A stretch of DNA of 64,000 nt from Podarcis gaigeae (lineage: Eukaryota): NCBI GenBank assembly GCA_964106915.2, contig OZ066922.1. The stretch is one strand, 5' to 3'. Below the pieces are notes generated by a model. The model did not search any database, was not told the origin of the DNA, and saw only the letters and a program-made list of their open reading frames with translations. The position numbers and the translations under genes are program-made. Of this stretch, positions 1 through 63,304 are shown one piece after another (position 1 is the first letter of the stretch; each line of letters begins with the position of its first letter).

Positions 1-2327
1 GTATCTAATTAACTGTCTTTTAATACCACACAAAATGTCAAAGAGGTATTAGAGACAGCTGAAAAAATGAGGCTAAAAATGCACAGTGTCTAGCTATTCA
101 CCGAGTACATTTGAGCATTGGAAGCAAATGGTGTTTGCCCGTGCGGGTCATGATTTGGTGCCAGATACTGCCCTGATCACAGACAACAATAATAAAGCAC
201 CCCTGGCACTCCTCATGTGCATCAAAGCTATTGGCTCATGACCAGTGATGATAATACTGTTCTTGCCAGTATATGGTCTCTTGTCTCAATTATGACCGGC
301 TTTCAGTCTTGCATGAAGACCCTGTTTATCCAGTACTCAAACCCTTGGGGAGTTAATCACAGCAAGCAAATTGCTATTCAAAACCAGGATCTCATCTTCA
401 GTATGTGGCCAGATCACTGCAGCATCCCCATCCTCCATTACTCAAATACTCACCATCACATGTGAGCTTGCCAAGCCAACAGGTTGCATTGGAAAAGGAT
501 TTCGAAGGCTAAAAGGTGGTAATAGGCTGGAGAAAGGCAATATGTTGCATAGAGAAAAGATCTGGAGGCTCACAATCTGGGGACAATGCCCAGTGAATTT
601 TAGTAGCTAAAGGGGTGGCTGAATAAGGGCTAGGCTAGATCTGATGTTGCTCACATGTTTAATGCTGATTAAATAAAAAATAAAAATAAATAGCCAGTGT
701 GGAATGGCAAGCTGGATTGGGATCATAGCTGAGGAGGAGATATTTTATCCCTTAACCCTTCCATGGTCCTGATATGAATTGGGGCCCTCCACATCTGCTA
801 TTTACAGTAGAAGAAATGCTTCCATTGGCATATTGGCAATGCTGTTATGCAGAAGTACTGGCACAACCTTCTTTTTATTTATCATCGTAGGACACTTTAG
901 GAGCCCTTTCGGGCTGGAAAGCGGAGTGAAATATAAATAAATAAATAAAGACCCGTTTGGCTCCACTGATTTTTTTCCCCAGCTGCCCAGCTGAAAAGCA
1001 GCACAAAAGGAAACAGAGATTACTTAAATAAATGATGCTGTAATATGCTTTAGGTAAGCAGCCTTGAGCTTTGGAAAGGTAGGATTCAAGGGTTTTAAAT
1101 AAATCCCTTTTCTAAATAAATCAGTCTGCATACTTCAGTCAATAATTCCCCTCCATGGCTTCATATATATTTTTATTGAAAAAGTTAAGAAATGTTCAGT
1201 ATTTACTGCTGCCAATAAACATTTACTTTTGAGCCATTTTTCAAAGAAGCCATTCATATTTTGTCTGAAAATATTTGAACTGCTACTACTGAATCTTAAC
1301 AATACAGTCTGCTGCCTTGTATTCTAGAATAGCAATGATTTCCTTTCTCCCTGACCTTACCCAGCCGTTGGGTTGGAGCCAGACCTGTACTTTTAAGCCT
1401 ATATATGTTTTCTGTCCAGCTGTGTTCAATGGAGCCTACTCCCAGGAAACTCTTCAGAGTTGAACAAGATGAAGTGTGTATTGGTTTGCAGCTATAATCT
1501 CACTGAAATCAGCAGGAGAAGTTGGTCACAACTCACTTTTAAGCTCATTGCTTCCAATTGGAACTTAAAGGATTATTAACCCAACCTGGATTCAACTCAC
1601 AGACTTTGAATGAATGAACTCTCCTGCCCACCTCTCATGATAACATAGGTGCTTCTGACCATCTCCCATAAATGTGAATGGGATTCCTGCTGGAATGTAT
1701 CCAATGGCTCTGGAATGAATGAATCAGTGTTCCCTTAGTCAGAATGTCACAATGCAAAGATCCCTTCAGAGCTGTAAGCTTTGATTTAAAATTGTAATGC
1801 TCAACCTTTTCTCACACTAACACATTCTGACTTGTAGGATCTCACATATATCACCTCCACACTGAAACTACCATAGTAAAAATAACAATTTACTTTTATA
1901 ACAATGTTATTGCACACTGTAGGGAAATCCTTCACAAGGGAAAGGAATGATATGCACACTCTGGAAAAAATATGTATCTCCATGCAATAACTGGTATGCC
2001 ATTTGGGATTTTATGCAATATCAGGAAAATGCAATGCACATTCAATGGACATTTTGTTCCTGGTAGAATATAAGAAATTGTGGACAATATCCTGCTTCTG
2101 ATAGAATAGATTCTTCGAATTTAAGTCACTTACATCCATGGATTTCAGTGGGTGTGCTATGAAACATTGGATATCACCCTATGCTCCAGAAATTATTAAT
2201 TATAATAAGGGCTGTAACTCAGCTAAATAAATGTTAACAGCACAATCCTTATCAGGTCTACGCAGAAGTGACCCCCATTGAATAAAATGGGACTTACCCC
2301 CTTATAAATGGGATTAGCATTGCGGCC

Positions 2328-3232
2328 ATTTGGACTTCCAACTTATATGAGAGACTAAATTGGGATCTCTAAACTATATGAGAGACTGGCTTCTGGAGAA
2401 CTGAGACGCTGGGGAACTAAAACGCCGATATAGCTAAAAAACGCTACCTCATAGAGACTTGGTGATACCTAGTGACACCTAGTGGCAGGATGGAGATCGC
2501 TTAATTTCTGACCGGTCTCTGCTTCCTCCTGCTCTCCCTCCCTCCCCCCTGCCCCCCAATCTGTTTCTTTCTCTTTTTCTTTGTTATATACCTTTTCTAC
2601 TAAGTGCTCTTGTGTGCCTACCCAGCCATATGGACTAGCCAGATTGGAAGCGAGATGATTTTCTGGTAGTGGAATAATTCAATCGGAGGAAAGAAGAATC
2701 TACAGGATTTTGTAGCAAGAACTTTATAGTGACTTTCTGGAAAATATTTATATATGAGACTAAACTCCGGAGAATTAAGATGCTGACATACCTTTAGAAA
2801 GCAATTTGGACTTCCAACTTATATGAGAGACTAAATTGGGATCTCTAAACTATATGAGAGACTGGCTTCTGGAGAACTAAGACGCTGGGGAACTAAAACG
2901 CCGATATAACTAAAAAACGCTAACTCATAGAGACTTGGTGACACCTAGTGACACCTAGTGGCAGGATGGAGATCGCTTAATTTCTGACCGGTCTCTGCTT
3001 CCTCCTGCTCTCCCTCCCTTCCCCCCTGCCCCCCAATCTGTTTCTTTCTTTTTTTCTTTGTTATATACCTTTTCTATTAAGCGCTCTTGTGTGCCTACCC
3101 AGCCATATGGACTAGCAAGATTGGAAGCGAGAAGATTTTCTGGTAGTGGAATAATTCGATCGGAGGAAAGAAGAATCTACAGGATTTTGTAGCAAGAACT
3201 TTATAGTGACTTTCTGGAAAATATTTATATAT
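2328..3232 (+). repeat. Tandem duplication with ~476-bp period forming the L1 5'UTR
   Basis: ATTTGGACTTCCAACTTATATGAGAGACT starts at 2328 and at 2804; copies are near-identical for ~430 bp. Confidence 0.92.
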
Positions 3233-3382: not shown

Positions 3383-4377
3383 ATGTCACATACACGAAAG
3401 AAGGGAACAAATGGGGGGACCCCTGGTGACAGGAGGGGCTCTAAACAAGAGGTAGATTTTAAGACAGATATTTTGAAGATGTTTGCGGAAATTAAACAGA
3501 GTCAAAACAATTTAGAGCACAAATTAGAGCAGGTAGATAATAAGATTGGGAGAATGGATAAAAAAATGGATGAAACGGTGAACGAACTCAAAGGCCAAAT
3601 AAAGGAAATATTTAGGAGAACGCAGCTCACTGAAGAAGGGTTAAAGAGGACAAGGTTGGAACTAAAGGATATAAAAAGGATAAAGAAAGGGTTAAAGCAG
3701 AAGTGATGGATTTAAATAAGGCACAGGAGGAGATGAAGGATATTATAGCGATGAATGAACTAAGGCAGAGGGAGGTGAATCTGAGGCTTAGAGCTGTACC
3801 AGAGACACAAAATGAAAATATTAAGGAGAAACTGATAAAGGAGCTAGCGGAATGGATGGGCGTACCAGTTGAGGAAATGGTCAAAAATGTACAGAACGCA
3901 TTTAGAATGCGGGTCAGTACAATGAGAGTAAAGAAATTTACAGGTGACTGCCTGATTACATTTAAGGATAAAGAAATGAGGAATAGGATTCTTCAAAGGA
4001 ATAGAGATAAGAGGCTGAATATAGACAGGAACTACATTATTATCTTCAAAGACATCCCAATCAGATTACTTAAACGAAGAGACTCTTACAAATCATTGGC
4101 GCAATCATTGAAGAAAAACAAAATCGAATTTAGATGGGAATTCCCGGAAGGGTTATCATTTACATATAGAGGCAAGAGGCATAGGTTATCAAATCAGGAA
4201 GAAACCGGGAAATTTCTGAGGAAATATAAGGAATTGAGAGTGGAGGCGAACGGTATGGGGGGAGCAGAGAGAGGATCATCAGGAGAACCAGAAGCAAAAG
4301 AGGAGGAGGAGAGGGGAGGAAGCGGACCGGACGAAGAGACAGAGGAAGAAGAAGAGGAAGACCCAGGGAATTTATAA
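3383..4377 (+). pseudogene. L1 ORF1 (coiled coil plus RNA-binding region, acidic tail), one frameshift
   Basis: ORFs 3383-3706 and 3703-4377 join via a 1-nt indel near the A-run at ~3673-3677; heptad-rich N-terminus; NLRLRAVPE and FRWEFPEGL resemble L1 ORF1 motifs. Confidence 0.85.
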
Positions 4378-4410
4378 AGAAAAGGAAAACTTAAGTGAGA
4401 GTTAGATATC

Positions 4411-7400
4411 ATGGGGTTAAAAATTTGGAGTTGGAACATTAATGGGATGAACGAGAAAAAGAAGAGGAATAAAATTGAGCAATATTTGAAAAAGAAAAAC
4501 TTGGATATTATTTGTCTTCAGGAAACGCACGTAGCCAGAAGACATAGGAAAGTATTAATTAATAAGAGATTGGGAAATGAATTTGATTCTCTGGACAGAG
4601 AAAAGAAAAGAGGGGTAGTATTGTATATTAAAAATAAGATCGAAGCCAAAACAATATTTAAAGACGAGGAGGGGAGGATGATAGGGGTCCGTATTAATTG
4701 GCAAGGAGAAAATCTGGTGGTAATCGGGGTGTACGCTCCAAACGGAAATAAGACTGAATTCTTTAAAAAATTAGAAGAGAAAACATCTGAATATGTAGAT
4801 CAGAAAATTATCTTAGTGGGTGATATGAATGGGGTGGTTTCGTTAGGAATTGATAGATACAGGGAAGGAGTAAGTAAGGAAGGGAAACTACCAAAAACTT
4901 TCTTTTCAATGGTGGAAAACTGCAATTTGATAGATATATGGCGCCTCAGGCACCCTCTAGATAAACAATTCACCTTTCACTCCGAACCAAACCAGTCGAT
5001 GTCGCGTATAGATCAGATATGGATTTCAAGTGAATTATGTCCAAGAGTTAAACTAATAGAAATAAGACCGAAAGTAATCTCAGACCATAATCCAATAGAG
5101 TTGGAATTAGAAAGCTTGGAGACAAGAACCTTCAGATGGAGACTGAAATACTATCTCCTGGATGATCAGAAAATTGTTGAAACTGCGCAGGAAAAATTGA
5201 TGCATTACTTTGCGGATAATTGTGATAAAGGAACAAAGGTTAATGTAGTGTGGGATGCAAGTAAGGCAGTGATAAGAGGATATTTTATCCAGCAGAATTC
5301 AATTTAAAATAAGATTAGAGAGAAAGGTAAAGAAGAAATCCTAAGGCAGATAATGGTAAACAAACAAAAACTATCCCAGAAACCTAACTGTCAGAAAGCA
5401 AAAGAAAGAATAAAAATTCTACAAGCCCAATTTGCCGCAATAATAAATAGAGAGGTGGAGTGGAATATCAAAAAATTAAGACAAAAAAACTTCGAATTTT
5501 CGAATAAGTCAGGCAAATGGCTTGCATGGCAAATTAAAAAGAGGAAGGAACAGAGCACAATAAATAAAATAATAGTGGGGGGGGAGAGAAAAAACTGACC
5601 CTAAAGGAATTAGGAGGGAGTTCCTCAACTACTATAGAAGTTTATATAAAAATAACGAGAGAATAAGTTTAAGGAGGATAGAGAGATTTTTGAAGGATAA
5701 AGGGGTGCAAAAACTTTCAACAGAGGAAAAACAACGACTGAATAACCCAATTGGAAATGAAGAGATAGAAGACGTAATTAAAGATCTAAAGAGGGGGAAA
5801 GCTCCTGGCCCGGATGGATTTACCGCAGGCTATTATAAAGAGATGAAATCTGTTCTGGTGGGACCCCTGAAAGAGACTATGAACAATATCTTAAGGAAAG
5901 GAGAATTCCCAGAGACTTGGAAGGAGGCATACATCACATTCATCCCTAAACAGGATGCAGATCCAACCCAAGTTAGAAATTATAGACCAATCTCACTACT
6001 AAATACAGACTATAAAATATTTGCAGGGATCCTTGCAAAAAGGTTGAAGAGGTTGCTATCAGAAATTATTCATAGGGACCAAGCGGGATTCCTGCCAGGT
6101 CGGCAGTTGAGAGATAACATAAGAAATATAGTCAATATGTTAGAATACCTATCTGTCAAGATTGATAAACAAGTTATAATGATGTTTGTGGATGCCGAGA
6201 AGGCATTCGACAATGTGATATGGGACTTCATGCTGAAAAATCTAGAATATATGGACGTGGGAAACGACTTTTTTAACGGGGTAAAAGCTATATATACAGA
6301 CCAGAAAGCTAAACTGATCATTAATAACATTGTGACAGAAGAGATAAAGATACAAAAAGGAAGAAGACAGGGTTGTCCACTCTCCCCACTTTTGTTTATA
6401 ACAGTTTTAGAAGTTCTTCTAAACTCTATAAGACAAAATCAAAAAATAAAAGGAGTGTTAATTGGACAGAATGTATACAAGATTAGAGCCTTCGCGGATG
6501 ACGTAGTAATAATGACAGAAGAACCAACAATTGCAATAGAAGAAATATTAAAGGAATTAGACCAGTTTGGGGAGGTAGCAGGGTTCAAATTAAATAAGAT
6601 GAAAACGAAAATGATAGGTAAAAATGTAGACTTAAAGACAACAGAAATAATTCAACTCCAATCGCAAATAGAGGTGGTTAAAAAAGTGAAATATCTCGGT
6701 ATTTGGCTAACACCTAAAAATATAGATTTATTCAAAAATAATTATGAGCCGGTGTGGAGGGAAATAAGAAAGGATTTGGAAATATGGGGAGGGCTGAAAC
6801 TGTCATTCTGGGGAAGGATTAATACAATTAAGATGAATGTCCTTCCACGGCTGATGTTCTTATTCCAGACTATTCCTATAATTAAGGGGAGCCGAATCTT
6901 TAAAGAGTGGCAAAGAGTGCTCTCAAGATACATCTGGCAGGGAAAAAAACCTAGGATTCAGTTCAAATTATTAACGGATATAAAAGAAAGGGGGGGTTTT
7001 GCGCTGCCGGATGTGAAACTATATTATGAGGCAGTTTGCCTCTGTTGGATAAGAGATTGGGTAAAGTTAGTGAATAGGGAGCTTCTCGATTTGGAGGGCT
7101 TCGATAATAGATTCGGCTGGCACGCCTATTTATGGCAGAACAAAAGAAAAGTACATAAGGGATTTGAAAATCATATTTTTAGAGGGCCATTAATTGAAAT
7201 ATGGGGAAAATATAAAAATTTGTTGGAACCGAAAACACCACACTGGCTTTCACCCCCGGAAGTAATGAGTGTAAAGACTATTAATATGAGAAGTAATTGG
7301 GCAACATACAGTCAGTTATTAACTAAAGAAGATGGGAAATGGAAGGTTAGACCATACGAACAAGTGAAGGACCATGTTTATGATTGGCTACACCATCTTC

Positions 7401-8173
7401 AGGTGAGTCAGATGTTCAGAAAAGATATTAAAGAAAGAGGCTATGCAGAGAAAGAGTCCAAATATCAGACGGAGATTATAAATAATGAAGAGAAAATTAT
7501 ATCTAAAATGTATAGAATACTGTTAGATTGGAACTTGGGAGACGAGGAAGTCAAATCCGTGATGATCCGCTGGGCAAAGGATGTAGGACATAGTATACTA
7601 TTTCAGGACTGGGAAAAACTTTGGAAGGATGGATTAAATTTTACGGCGTGTATAATGATAAAGGAAAATGTCATGAAGATGTTCTATAGGTGGTACTTAA
7701 CACCTATGAAACTATCGAAAATGTATAAGGTGGACAATAAGTGTTGGAAATGCAAGGACAAAGAGGGCTCCTTTTACCACATGTGGTGGGAGTGTGGAAA
7801 AGTAAAACAGTTTTGGGAAAATATCTACATTGAACTAAAGAAGATCCTAAAATATACGTTCACAAAGAAATCAGAAATTTTCCTATTAGGGATTCTAGGC
7901 CACGAGATAAAAAAAGAAGACTGTAAATTAGTATACTATGCAGTCACAGCTGCAAGGGTAGTGCTAGCCCAGATGTGGAAACAGCAGGAAACACCAACGG
8001 TGGAGGAGTGGAGATCAAAGCTGCTAGACTACGCGGAATTGGATAAACTTACAGGAAAAGTTAGGTATATAAGAGACCAAAAGTTCATCAAGGATTGGGG
8101 AAAGTACGTAGACTATCTGGAATCTATCAGTGAGGGAAAAACAACGCTAAAGGGATTCAGAGATGCACTGTGA
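4411..8173 (+). pseudogene. L1 ORF2: APE endonuclease, reverse transcriptase, CCHC knuckle; one nonsense codon and one frameshift
   Basis: EN motifs SWNING, LQETH, GDMN, SRID, SDH; RT motifs KAPGPDGF, YRPISLLN, DAEKAFD, QGCPLSP, FADD, KYLG; CWKC..HMWWEC; TAA at 5305-5307; +1 shift in G8 run 5577-5584. Confidence 0.95.
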
Positions 8174-11925: not shown

Positions 11926-12673
11926 TTACTACTATTATATTATTATTATTATCTTTTGGGGGGCAAGATTTAGTAATGGCACTTGTAAGCATGGATGTTT
12001 GCATAGGAAATGGAGATAATTGGGAAGACATAAACGTTAAATACGAACTCAAGCCAGCTTGTAGGTGTCACATACAGTGATATGCCTCAGTATCACTGCA
12101 TGTCAGTTACCAAACATTGTCACGTACTAACTCTAAGCAGCCTCTCTAAGGCTTTCCAGCTGCCCAAGTCCCATAATATCTTCATGGTGCCAAATCTACT
12201 TTCCTCAGAGTCTAGCTTTTCATGAGATCTTTGACTTCTCCTTTTAAAACTTTGTTCTTAATCATAAACAAAATTCGGAAGCATTTTAAGTAGTTTTATC
12301 TACTTTTATATATTCTGTTTTGTTGATGGGCAACACAAACAATTTCCTGTAGGCTCTTTTATAAAAGCTAGCTGAGCCAACCACTGCTAATAAAGCTCTG
12401 TCCTCAAACATGAGGAAAAGATTTCAAAGGATGAGAAAATGACCAGGAAAAGGCCCAAGATCCTATTACAAGTCTTGTAATCCGACCCTAAATGTGATTA
12501 TTGAAAAGTAAGTCCCACTTTGTTCAGTGGGACCTGCTTCCTAGTAAGCATGCTTAGAATTGCAGTCTTAACTGAAGTCTGGCTTTGAAGAAATATCATT
12601 AGCACAACCTATTCATTTGACGCTATCTTAGAATCCTTTTCACCAGAGACTCAAGGGTGGTTTCCTTGTCCAT

Positions 12674-12767
12674 ACAAAAAAAAATTCCTTCCAGTAGCAC
12701 CTTAAAGACCAACTAAGTCAGTTCTTGGTATGAGCTTTCGTGTGCATGCACACTTCTTCAGATACAC
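12674..12767 (-). mobile_element. 94-bp Penelope-like element terminal fragment with 10-bp TSD
   Basis: TSD CCTTGTCCAT at 12664-12673 and 12768-12777; shares AATTCCTTCCAGTAGCACCTTAAAGACCAACTAAG with 61654-61690; contains a hammerhead motif. Confidence 0.75.
12728..12765 (-). ncRNA. Minimal type I hammerhead ribozyme motif
   Basis: Minus strand reads GUAU-CUGAAGA-A-GUGUG(CAUG)CACAC-GAAA-GC-UC-AUAC: catalytic boxes, 4-bp stem I, 5-bp stem II, palindromic AGCU stem III. Confidence 0.75.
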
Positions 12768-13795
12768 CCTTGTCCATGTTTATGAGGACTGTGCCATCAA
12801 GTAATGACTTGCATGCGTACATGCCACCAGGTGTCATCGCAGATGCCTTGCTTTTCAGTAGCATCAGTTCATACGATTAGAAGGGTGCATAATCAAGTCT
12901 AGAGTCATCAAGAGGCATACATTTGTGAACTAGACCTAAGAGAATTCCTTTTCAGGAGGGAGTCAGTTTTAGGAAAGCTTTGACTGTAATTTTAGACTGG
13001 TTCCTATTTACATATTTGGTTGTTTGTTACTGCTAGTACTAACCAAGAAATAATCTGAAACCATTTTAAGTAGGGGCACTTAATTATCTACTATAGGCAT
13101 GAGGAACATTTGACCCTCCAGATATTGCTGAACTGCAACTCCCATCATCCCTTGCCATTGGCCACACTTCCAGAGGCTGATGGGAATTGTAATTCAGTAA
13201 CATTTGGAGAGCTCCCTGCACCTGATCTGCTGCAGCACATGGTTGGAATTCTATCCTCTGATCTGCTTTTATTCCAGTCAAAAAGTAGCACTAGTCCTAA
13301 AGTGTCTGTTAGTCGTTGTTACCTGCAGGCCCCTCCTAGTCCTAGGGTGCTACTGTAAAAGCTCTGGTTAAGATATTGAGATAAATATCAGAACCAATGA
13401 TTTCACCTGTTTCTGGGAAGAATACACCAGCATTTTTTTGCTGATAGCATCTCTTTAACTATGTAATTCTACTTGAATTCTAGTTGAATTCAACAGGACT
13501 TGCTCCAAATCCCAAGTTAGCCAACTGGCTTTCAGAAAGACTGAAGGAAATCACCAACTCATGGACAAATACTCAATTACTCATTCCAACAAAATTTATA
13601 ATATGTGTGTTTGTAGCAGGGATAGCTAGTATCTGAGGGTTAACATGACAGTTCCATAAACTGTGAACAGGTCTTCAGTTAGGTATCACCACCAGACATA
13701 CTAAATTTGATATTAACATCAGGTTATTAATATTAAAATGTAATAAATTTCAACCAAGTTTTCCTGCTCAAAATATAACATGGCACTGGCATTTA

Positions 13796-14938: not shown

Positions 14939-15086
14939 GCTGGGATAGCTCAGTCGGTAGAGCACGAGACTCTTAATCTCAAGGTCATGAGTTTGAGCCC
15001 CACGTTGGGCAAAAGATTCCTGCATTGCAGGGGGTTGGACTAGATAACCCTTGTGGTACTTCCAATGCTACAGTTCCATGATTCTA
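14939..15086 (+). mobile_element. tRNA-Lys(CTT)-derived SINE with CR1-type 3' tail
   Basis: Head TAGCTCAGTCGGTAGAGCACGAGACTCTTAATCTC..GAGCCCCACGTTGGGC fused to GGTTGGACTAGAT..TTCCAA..ATGATTCTA; more copies in the window. Confidence 0.8.
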
Positions 15087-18252: not shown

Positions 18253-18492
<240 letters not shown>

Positions 18493-31253: not shown

Positions 31254-55864
<24,611 letters not shown>

Positions 55865-61324: not shown

Positions 61325-62192
61325 TGTCATGACTTCCAGGCTAGCTGCCTAGTGAAATCAGAGATGCAGAGAGTTTCTATTAGTTCTTTTATTTTAAATC
61401 AACAGAATACACAGAGAGACCATTGATAATGCTCCCTTCAGTCTTGGGGTGTTGCTCAAAGTGTCCGCTCCATCCCCCTTGCAGCAATTGCCCTAGCTTC
61501 CAAACCCCTCCTTACTGCCTACGGTGGCTGGCAATGGAATCTTTCTGTCTCTGTTTTGCCTTCTGCTCTAAGATACGAAGAGATTGCTTGGTCCATAGAG
61601 AAGGAGAAGGTTCCATCAGGTTTTCAGATTGTGACGTAGTGTCCACTCAAAAAAAAATTCCTTCCAGTAGCACCTTAAAGACCAACTAAGTTAGTTCTTA
61701 GTTGGTCTTTAAGGTGCTACTGGAAGGAATTTTGTTTTGTTTTGACTATGGCAGACCAACACGGCTACCTATCTGTAGTGTCCACTGTATGCTGTACTGT
61801 TTACCCCACTTCTGAATGCTGTCTCTGTTCAGGACTAGAGAATCTGCTTGCATGCTCATGTTCCACATCTTCCATTGCTTCCCAGTTCTTGGCTTCCTCT
61901 CCTGGGGTGTGTACTGTTCTCCACCACCACAAATCTGGGTCCATTGAATCCAGGTCCATCATATCATCAACCTCCTCCTGCCCAGACACATCTTGAGGTG
62001 GAGGTCTCCACCACTCCTCTGTACGAAGGGTCTCCACCCTCTGTGAAACCTCACAGCAGGTGTGCAATTAATGGAGGGTAGAGGTGATTTATGGTGCTTC
62101 CTGCCCTCTGTTAAACAACTTACCTGGGCCTGCTTGTGGTTCCTCATGCTGCAGTTGGCAGGGCAGCCTATTGGCTGTAGAGCACAATGACA
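61325..62192 (-). mobile_element. Solo-LTR-like element
   Basis: TGTCAT...ATGACA termini, flanking CCTTACC direct repeat, minus-strand AATAAA ~60 nt from the end. Confidence 0.55.
61648..61774. mobile_element. 127-bp Penelope-like terminal fragment with inverted duplication and 12-bp TSD
   Basis: TSD GTAGTGTCCACT at 61636-61647 and 61775-61786; 37-bp perfect inverted repeat; same family as 12674-12767. Confidence 0.75.
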
Positions 62193-63104: not shown

Positions 63105-63304
63105 NNNNNNNNNNNNNNNNNNNNNNNNNNNNNNNNNNNNNNNNNNNNNNNNNNNNNNNNNNNNNNNNNNNNNNNNNNNNNNNNNNNNNNNNNNNNNNNN
63201 NNNNNNNNNNNNNNNNNNNNNNNNNNNNNNNNNNNNNNNNNNNNNNNNNNNNNNNNNNNNNNNNNNNNNNNNNNNNNNNNNNNNNNNNNNNNNNNNNNNN
63301 NNNN
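63105..63304. other. Assembly gap (200 N)
   Basis: N run. Confidence 0.99.

Follow-up and report, generated by a model that had tools for sequence, protein, structure and literature searches.

Minimal hammerhead ribozymes of type I were described in Penelope-like elements (PLEs) of metazoans by Cervera and de la Pena (2014; PMC4209133). Most of these motifs are found as dispersed single copies derived from truncated PLEs, and reptiles (turtle and snakes) were already among their carriers. Lone PLE hammerheads displayed no detectable cleavage in vitro and dimers cleaved weakly (PMC4209133). As regards their genomic layout, inverted 5'-truncated partner copies and partial tandems are standard for PLEs (PMC8557442), and an optional tail of 30-40 bp, i.e., two alternative 3' ends, has been described as well (PMC8557442, PMC11167929).

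A second system of reference is Poseidon_Ac (PAc), a PLE of Anolis carolinensis (Frangieh et al., 2024; PMC11167929). Its hammerhead reads CCU CUGAGGA U GCCUGC..GUGGGC GAAA CG UC (File S1 of PMC11167929, parsed by eye) and is cut after nt 29; the tail is around 34-35 nt long (nt 85-119), which places the two 3' ends at about 56 and 90 nt past the cut, and these ends correspond to two internal start sites of reverse transcription. The PAc protein cleaves and extends both DNA strands and requires an RNA that extends past the start sites of reverse transcription, to about +172 of the ORF. The hammerhead cleaves only with the protein of the element and is dispensable for insertion. In Anolis RNA-seq no read ends at the PAc cut site, and coverage peaks at the junction between pLTR and ORF (PMC11167929).

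Animal non-LTR retrozymes (PMC7229834; Li et al., 2026, 10.64898/2026.07.22.740005) are short non-coding units with type-I hammerheads, coming from PLE pLTRs and occurring as duplication-flanked monomers. Monomers with a consensus down to 51 bp are known in vertebrates, including reptiles. In an active non-LTR retrozyme, two or more tandem hammerheads bound the excisable RNA.

A young insert with a complete hammerhead motif

The window, i.e., the whole 64-kb stretch of Podarcis gaigeae DNA analyzed here, contains a hammerhead motif within a short insert in an intron of GRIA2. The features at this locus were the following:

12664-12673, no strand: left copy of the target-site duplication, 10 bp, CCTTGTCCAT, seen by direct reading and in empty-site contigs
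12674-12767, minus strand (the element strand): insert attributed to a Penelope-like element, 94 bp, consisting of the hammerhead and 58 nt to the proximal 3' terminus
12674-12689, minus strand: 3' terminus of the 94-bp insert, GGAAGGAA-T9-GT, which is the proximal, tail-less family end
12728-12765, minus strand: minimal type-I hammerhead motif, by direct reading and structural descriptor
12731-12732, minus strand: predicted cleavage site, after C17 (12732) and before A1.1 (12731) in hammerhead numbering
12768-12777, no strand: right copy of the target-site duplication, 10 bp, CCTTGTCCAT, identical to the left copy at 10/10 positions
18261-18401 (approximate), minus strand: GRIA2 coding exon with AG/GT splice sites, 47-residue translation obtained with a local script

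Logan contigs of four public runs (three DNA runs, X3, X5, and X20, and one putative RNA run) were compared with positions 12300-13100. X3 is an independent sample of the species of the window, and X5 and X20 represent two related species (31-mer shares of 0.65 and 0.40, respectively; divergence around 1.5-3%). An empty site was found in both relatives, in one contig each (1,138 nt in X5 and 966 nt in X20); position 12663 was joined straight to 12768, the joints skipping 104 bases, with 10 letters compatible with either side. In X3, contigs ran into the 94-bp insert from both flanks, so that the filled state is no assembly artefact. The empty sites in the two related species indicated that the insert is young and its borders exact, and provided independent confirmation of the duplication, in agreement with the preliminary description, which had proposed a 94-bp insert flanked by a 10-bp duplication. 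The insert is a real and recent transposition.

On the minus strand, positions 12765-12728 read GUAU CUGAAGA A GUGUG CAUG CACAC GAAA GC UC AUAC, and the motif begins 2 nt inside the 5' edge of the insert. The invariant core is complete (C3 U4 G5 A6 N7 G8 A9, G12 A13 A14, the pair A15.1/U16.1, and C17, a permitted H17). Helix I (GUAU/AUAC) has 4 bp and is open-ended, which makes the motif type I. Helix II (GUGUG/CACAC, loop CAUG, closed by the pair G10.1-C11.1) has 5 bp, thus exceeding the canonical 4 bp and standing at the short end as compared to the 6-8 bp reported for PLEs (PMC4209133). A single bulged A lies between A9 and G10.1, and helix III is reduced to the pair A15.1-U16.1 within the palindrome AGCU (12736-12733, minus strand). 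All the defining features of the minimal hammerheads of metazoan PLEs are common to this motif, four of them listed in PMC4209133 and absent from our descriptor; the extra A after A9, already pointed out in the preliminary description, corresponds to the unpaired nucleotide that appears in that list. The plan is also that of PAc, where a short helix I leads into CUGANGA, a single bulged nucleotide comes before a helix II closed by G-C, and GAAA is followed by a palindrome of 2 nt and by UC at the cut. The assignment to a Penelope-type minimal type-I motif with palindromic helix III, also made beforehand, therefore fits both precedents.

A structural descriptor was built from the core boxes, a paired 4-bp helix I, a G-C-closed helix II of 4-8 bp, and a palindromic helix III. 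It matched once in the window, considering both strands, vs. no match in 300 random sequences of 64 kb with the same dinucleotide composition, which together with the direct reading bears out the complete motif that had been reported at these minus-strand positions. No second hammerhead was found on either strand of the window by descriptor or motif searches. The comparison with Rfam hammerhead models, suggested at the outset as a check, gave a negative outcome: cmscan of 12400-13000 with Rfam 15 and E values up to 10 produced no match to Hammerhead_1, Hammerhead_3, HH9, HH10, or II, and cmscan of the whole window at the gathering score retrieved two tRNA-like matches only and no hammerhead. 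We read this absence as a limit of the models and not as counter-evidence to the motif, since minimal PLE motifs have neither the real helix III nor the loops that the models expect. The 29-nt core gave no match in an exact-pattern scan of JGI metagenome contigs and IMG/VR viral contigs, and the 16-nt core string gave none in a full-text literature search.

Thermodynamic folding did not single out the motif. The 38-nt motif was no more stable than its shuffled versions (z = -0.44), and in the minimum-energy fold of the 94-nt insert (z = +1.30) the 5' half of the motif paired differently, disrupting the hammerhead. Cofolding of a dimer favored a duplex in which two molecules pair through the palindromic helix II over a double hammerhead through helix III, a result that is not decisive either way. 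The lack of folding signal and the negative Rfam outcome are what could be expected if the string were a chance match in ordinary intron sequence. Against this stand the absence of descriptor matches in the 300 random windows, the feature-by-feature agreement with the published plan of PLE hammerheads, and the membership of the string in a high-copy mobile family whose core shows no common variant other than the permitted H17, presented below. The probability of a chance match is practically nil, and we discarded this explanation on the basis of the random windows and of the contig evidence for a repeat family.

A very abundant family with two alternative 3' ends

Contigs matching the 94-bp insert at a likeness of at least 85% numbered 11,841 in X3, 14,430 in X5, and 4,794 in X20. 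In the putative RNA run, which comes from a more distant organism and does not contain the insert flanks, 548 contigs matched the insert, the repeat being embedded in longer contigs. Summed word depth was 4.7-6.3 million on the insert vs. 53-91 on the flanks, values which do not represent a copy number. The family of the insert is hugely repeated in the lizard lineage, and the order of magnitude is plain. The finding is no exceptional one, as the insert is one copy among very many in Podarcis gaigeae and its relatives.

Differences from the GRIA2-intron copy reached at least 10% of the family depth at six positions (12705, 12719, 12720, 12724, 12726, and 12732). All of them were located within 12705-12732, in the spacer that separates the 3'-terminal 27 nt from the ribozyme core, and the only one inside the motif, 12732, changes C17 to U17 on the element strand, a permitted H17. 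The proportion of variable positions was 1/38 in the motif vs. 5/50 in the rest (Fisher P = 0.23, not significant), among young copies that had little time to diverge, whereas their clustering in the 28-nt spacer gave P around 0.01 in a scan test picked after seeing the data. This pattern agrees with selection on the ribozyme and on the 3' end in the source elements; the evidence is weak because the copies are young.

Another insert of this family is present in the window:

61636-61647 and 61775-61786, no strand: target-site duplication of the second insert, 12 bp, GTAGTGTCCACT
61648-61774, left arm on the minus strand and right arm on the plus strand: second insert of the family, 127 bp, in which two 5'-truncated arms are folded back head to head

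Both arms begin downstream of the hammerhead and thus lack the motif. The left arm (minus strand) ends in GGAAT9G against its duplication, and the right arm (plus strand) consists of GGAATTTTGTTTTG followed by a 35-nt tail, TTTTGACTATGGCAGACCAACACGGCTACCTATCT, up to its duplication. Searches of the window for the upstream continuation and for further tails revealed no additional family copies. An N run occupies 63105-63304 of the window.

The three family arms in the window share GGAAGGAA(T)n, with the T9G end in two of them and an end 35 nt further in the third. The GGAAT9G terminus adjoins the duplication both in the GRIA2-intron insert and in the left arm of the second insert. Elsewhere in the genomes, many contigs lose likeness at 12674-12678, i.e., at the proximal 3' end, and the loose-end consensus GCCATAGTCAAAAC showed that the tail is carried by many other copies. 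The family has, therefore, two alternative 3' ends, located 57-58 and 92 nt past the predicted hammerhead cut, vs. the approximately 56 and 90 nt of PAc. Among the copies elsewhere in the genomes, contigs displayed joints between opposite strands (fold-backs) as well as joints that go back (head-to-tail); the GRIA2-intron locus itself is a plain single copy. Both layouts correspond to those known from PLEs (PMC8557442) and are consistent with the action of the PAc protein on the two DNA strands (PMC11167929). PAc and the Podarcis family are alike in being very abundant and in presenting inverted and tandem copies.

In contrast, the two sequences are barely alike and only short stretches coincide, e.g., GCTNCTGGAA and ATGGC..ACAC.GC (compared by eye). 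The T-rich run at the proximal end (T9G or TTTTGTTTTG) is a feature of the Podarcis family that PAc does not have. The PAc ORF begins inside helix II, whereas in the GRIA2-intron copy the ATG of the loop reaches a stop after 9 codons, which indicated a coding layout unlike that of PAc. PAc has a cognate ORF, whereas the window shows none for the repeat: no PLE ORF (telomerase-like reverse transcriptase plus GIY-YIG) was found in it, the only reverse transcriptase ORF (5690-8170) being that of an APE-type LINE. Strings of the family were not found in the supplementary files on Poseidon_Ac (PMC11167929), so the family differs from it, and the searchable literature yielded no record of its sequence. 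On the best reading, the repeat is attributed to PLEs by analogy with the systems described, the link to a coding PLE resting on architecture; the family is not Poseidon_Ac but a different PLE lineage of lizards or a non-autonomous derivative of such a lineage. The insert is an ordinary recent copy of a known kind of retroelement carrying the known ribozyme motif of that kind.

Regarding target choice, an AT-rich preference has been reported for PLEs. The target CCTTGTCCAT is not AT-rich, whereas the flanks of other copies of the family are, according to the loose-end consensus of the contigs; the composition of the target CCTTGTCCAT constitutes a counter-point to the PLE reading.

The family also resembles the non-LTR retrozymes, as head-to-tail copies of it exist elsewhere in the genomes. 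However, the GRIA2-intron locus has a single unit instead of tandem hammerheads, so that no ribozyme-bounded RNA could be excised from it, and the tandem joints of the Podarcis family fall at variable points of the T run, which resembles nested insertion and not the exact unit repeat of retrozymes. Signs of circular RNA were not found.

Taking the duplication, the empty sites, and the family architecture together, the 94 bp very probably derive from the 3'-terminal part of a very abundant PLE family, inserted recently and dead on arrival, with the hammerhead as a passenger. Following the example of Anolis Poseidon, the GIY-YIG endonuclease of the element would have made a cut with a stagger of 10 bp in the GRIA2 intron. 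Of the two internal start sites, reverse transcriptase would then have used the proximal one, 57-58 nt downstream of the ribozyme's cut site, and copied back through the hammerhead, the cDNA ending 2 nt upstream of helix I. The hammerhead would be the standard minimal ribozyme motif of the family, simply carried along. A copy that ends at the proximal start of reverse transcription probably lacks the downstream RNA used by the protein of the element and would hence be immobile. The insert had been presented in the preliminary description as a tiny Penelope-derived mobile unit; the Penelope derivation stands, whereas mobility is not supported, since by analogy with PAc (PMC11167929) the insert fits a terminal fragment or short cDNA ending at the proximal start site.

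The locus is a clean textbook case: its duplication is perfect, sister species have the empty site, and the window also contains a fold-back copy as a companion. The PLE integration signature, in which two internal start sites of reverse transcription are separated by around 35 nt and priming takes place from both strands of DNA, had so far been characterized biochemically only for Anolis Poseidon and can now be recognized in a second, sequence-unrelated lizard family.

The hammerhead copy and the GRIA2 pre-mRNA

The GRIA2 exon lies on the minus strand, and the insert is therefore located around 5.5 kb downstream of it, within the intron and in sense orientation, in accordance with the orientation given previously. 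By reference to the human gene, we take this exon to be exon 2 and the insert-bearing intron to be intron 2 of GRIA2.

The earlier proposal was that of a potentially self-cleaving RNA in GRIA2. On a rival reading, the hammerhead would be active in the pre-mRNA, through pairing in trans or with a PLE protein, and would cut intron 2, lowering or modulating GRIA2 expression. Several features are compatible with this: the catalytic core is complete and in sense orientation, core and stems contain no common family variant except the permitted H17, and the same build cleaves in Anolis with the protein of the element (PMC11167929). However, no partner hammerhead exists in the 64 kb, helix III has one pair, and the intermolecular AGCU helix, of 4 bp, is weak. 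The folding results reported above do not favor the active structure either, whether for the motif alone or in its 94-nt context. Single PLE motifs were inactive in vitro (PMC4209133), which also agrees with the restriction, expressed in the preliminary description, that the motif could act at best as a dimer, and Anolis RNA-seq contains no reads ending at the cut (PMC11167929). In addition, the copy does not include the segment past the start of reverse transcription that the protein requires, and the insertion is missing in two sister species, which makes a conserved role impossible. We consider cleavage with an effect on GRIA2 expression extremely improbable, and the earlier proposal is not upheld.

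By analogy with published PLE hammerheads, the GRIA2-intron copy most likely does not cut the pre-mRNA, given its one-pair helix III, the lack of a nearby partner, and the lack of downstream protein-recruiting RNA. From the Anolis system we infer that, because the copy ends at the start of reverse transcription, it would lack the protein-binding region and would be neither a substrate for protein-assisted cleavage nor mobile. Most likely it has no host function. For GRIA2 the insertion is of very little importance, being young, species-specific, and probably inert.

The recurrent 5' end of the family copies

Among the best-supported loose ends, beyond which 499 more exist, 65-70 contigs in each of the three DNA runs lost likeness exactly at 12765. 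The flanks past this position began with C, followed by unrelated sequence rich in AT (agreement of 0.36-0.37 and median length of 255). Within the same set of best-supported ends, 21-79 further contigs ended at 12766/12767, any copy longer than the GRIA2-intron one being clipped at 12767 by construction. Other contigs continued into a common upstream sequence, TGAAACAGAAGTCAC on the plus strand.

The recurrence in the family of a 5' end beside the hammerhead edge is a counter-point to random truncation. On one possible reading, a defined RNA 5' end agrees with it better than 5' truncation at random. The insert could then be the full-length cDNA of a short RNA whose beginning coincides with the 5' edge of the hammerhead or lies beside it, with reverse transcription from the internal start. 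A unit of around 90-130 nt would in that case be the main amplifying product of the family, either a mini-PLE or a monomer of the non-LTR-retrozyme type, driven in trans by autonomous PLEs. Besides the exact ends at 12765 and the additional stops at 12766/12767, this proposal is favored by head-to-tail joints elsewhere in the genomes that lead from 12765/12767 back to 12677-12690, by the PLE-derived non-LTR-retrozyme monomers of vertebrates, reptiles included, with a consensus down to 51 bp (10.64898/2026.07.22.740005; PMC7229834), and by the peak that Anolis RNA-seq coverage reaches where pLTR and ORF meet (PMC11167929). Conversely, contigs cannot reveal RNA ends, the 5'-end counts are affected by the selection and the clipping indicated above, and the loose-end consensus TGAAACAGAAGTCAC means that longer copies exist. 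We regard the short RNA as a tentative possibility, with the balance leaning against it; it refines the explanation preferred here, a recent terminal insertion with a passenger hammerhead, and does not replace it.

A more far-reaching version would be that the elements propagate mostly a leader RNA of around 90-130 nt, extending from the transcription start to the internal start of reverse transcription, and that sense intronic copies, that of GRIA2 included, could be cleaved with the help of PLE protein in cells expressing it and impose a species-specific drag on host pre-mRNAs. We consider this very unlikely; if true, propagation of leader RNA would account for the enormous numbers of mini-units and would imply thousands of sense-oriented intronic copies. 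Only one feature, the 5' end that recurs at the edge of the hammerhead, might add to what is known of how short PLE copies arise.

5' edge of family copies and open frame of the insert

Many copies of the family, the high-copy Penelope-like repeat to which the 94-bp hammerhead insert of the GRIA2 intron belongs (12674-12767, minus strand), ended exactly at 12765 in contigs of the DNA runs, and this occurred in three species. Past this position, the plus strand of such copies had one additional C (a G when read along the element strand), after which the sequence passed into AT-rich flanks. These recurrent ends suggested that the RNA has a defined 5' terminus at the edge of the hammerhead. Frame 0 of the insert was open from its first base, across the entire hammerhead, to a TAA at 12704-12702, and comprised 21 codons (VYLKKCACTRKLIPRTDLVGL).

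Second family insert and its target site

Another insert of the same family was organized as a fold-back:

61648-61774, head-to-head fold-back of two family arms, 127 bp, flanked by a 12-bp duplication

Both arms lacked the hammerhead; one of them carried the tail, a 35-nt extension past the proximal 3' end of the family, whereas the other was tail-less, and about 3 nt of common letters (CTT/AAG) were found at the arm junction. The motif TGTCCA was common to the target-site duplications of the two inserts (12664-12673, CCTTGTCCAT, and 61636-61647, GTAGTGTCCACT), with a chance of around 0.01 by rough estimate for these two cases (n = 2); this could reflect either target preference or coincidence.

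Other repeats in the window

The region 12489-12569, adjoining the hammerhead insert, was a further dispersed repeat. In each of the three DNA runs, its summed contig depth, which is not a copy number, was 1,000-3,200 as compared to 53-91 in the flanking sequence, and the repeat was also found in the putative RNA run.

The same GRIA2 intron harbored, in antisense orientation, a nearly intact APE-type non-LTR LINE (3703-8173, plus strand). This element contained three long ORFs, with lengths of 224, 298, and 827 aa, the second matching Exo_endo_phos and the third RVT_1.

Two tRNA-model matches scored barely over the gathering score (34 and 42 bits):

14939-15011, plus strand, tRNA-model match
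52353-52425, minus strand, tRNA-model match

Both are probably heads of tRNA-derived SINEs rather than tRNA genes.
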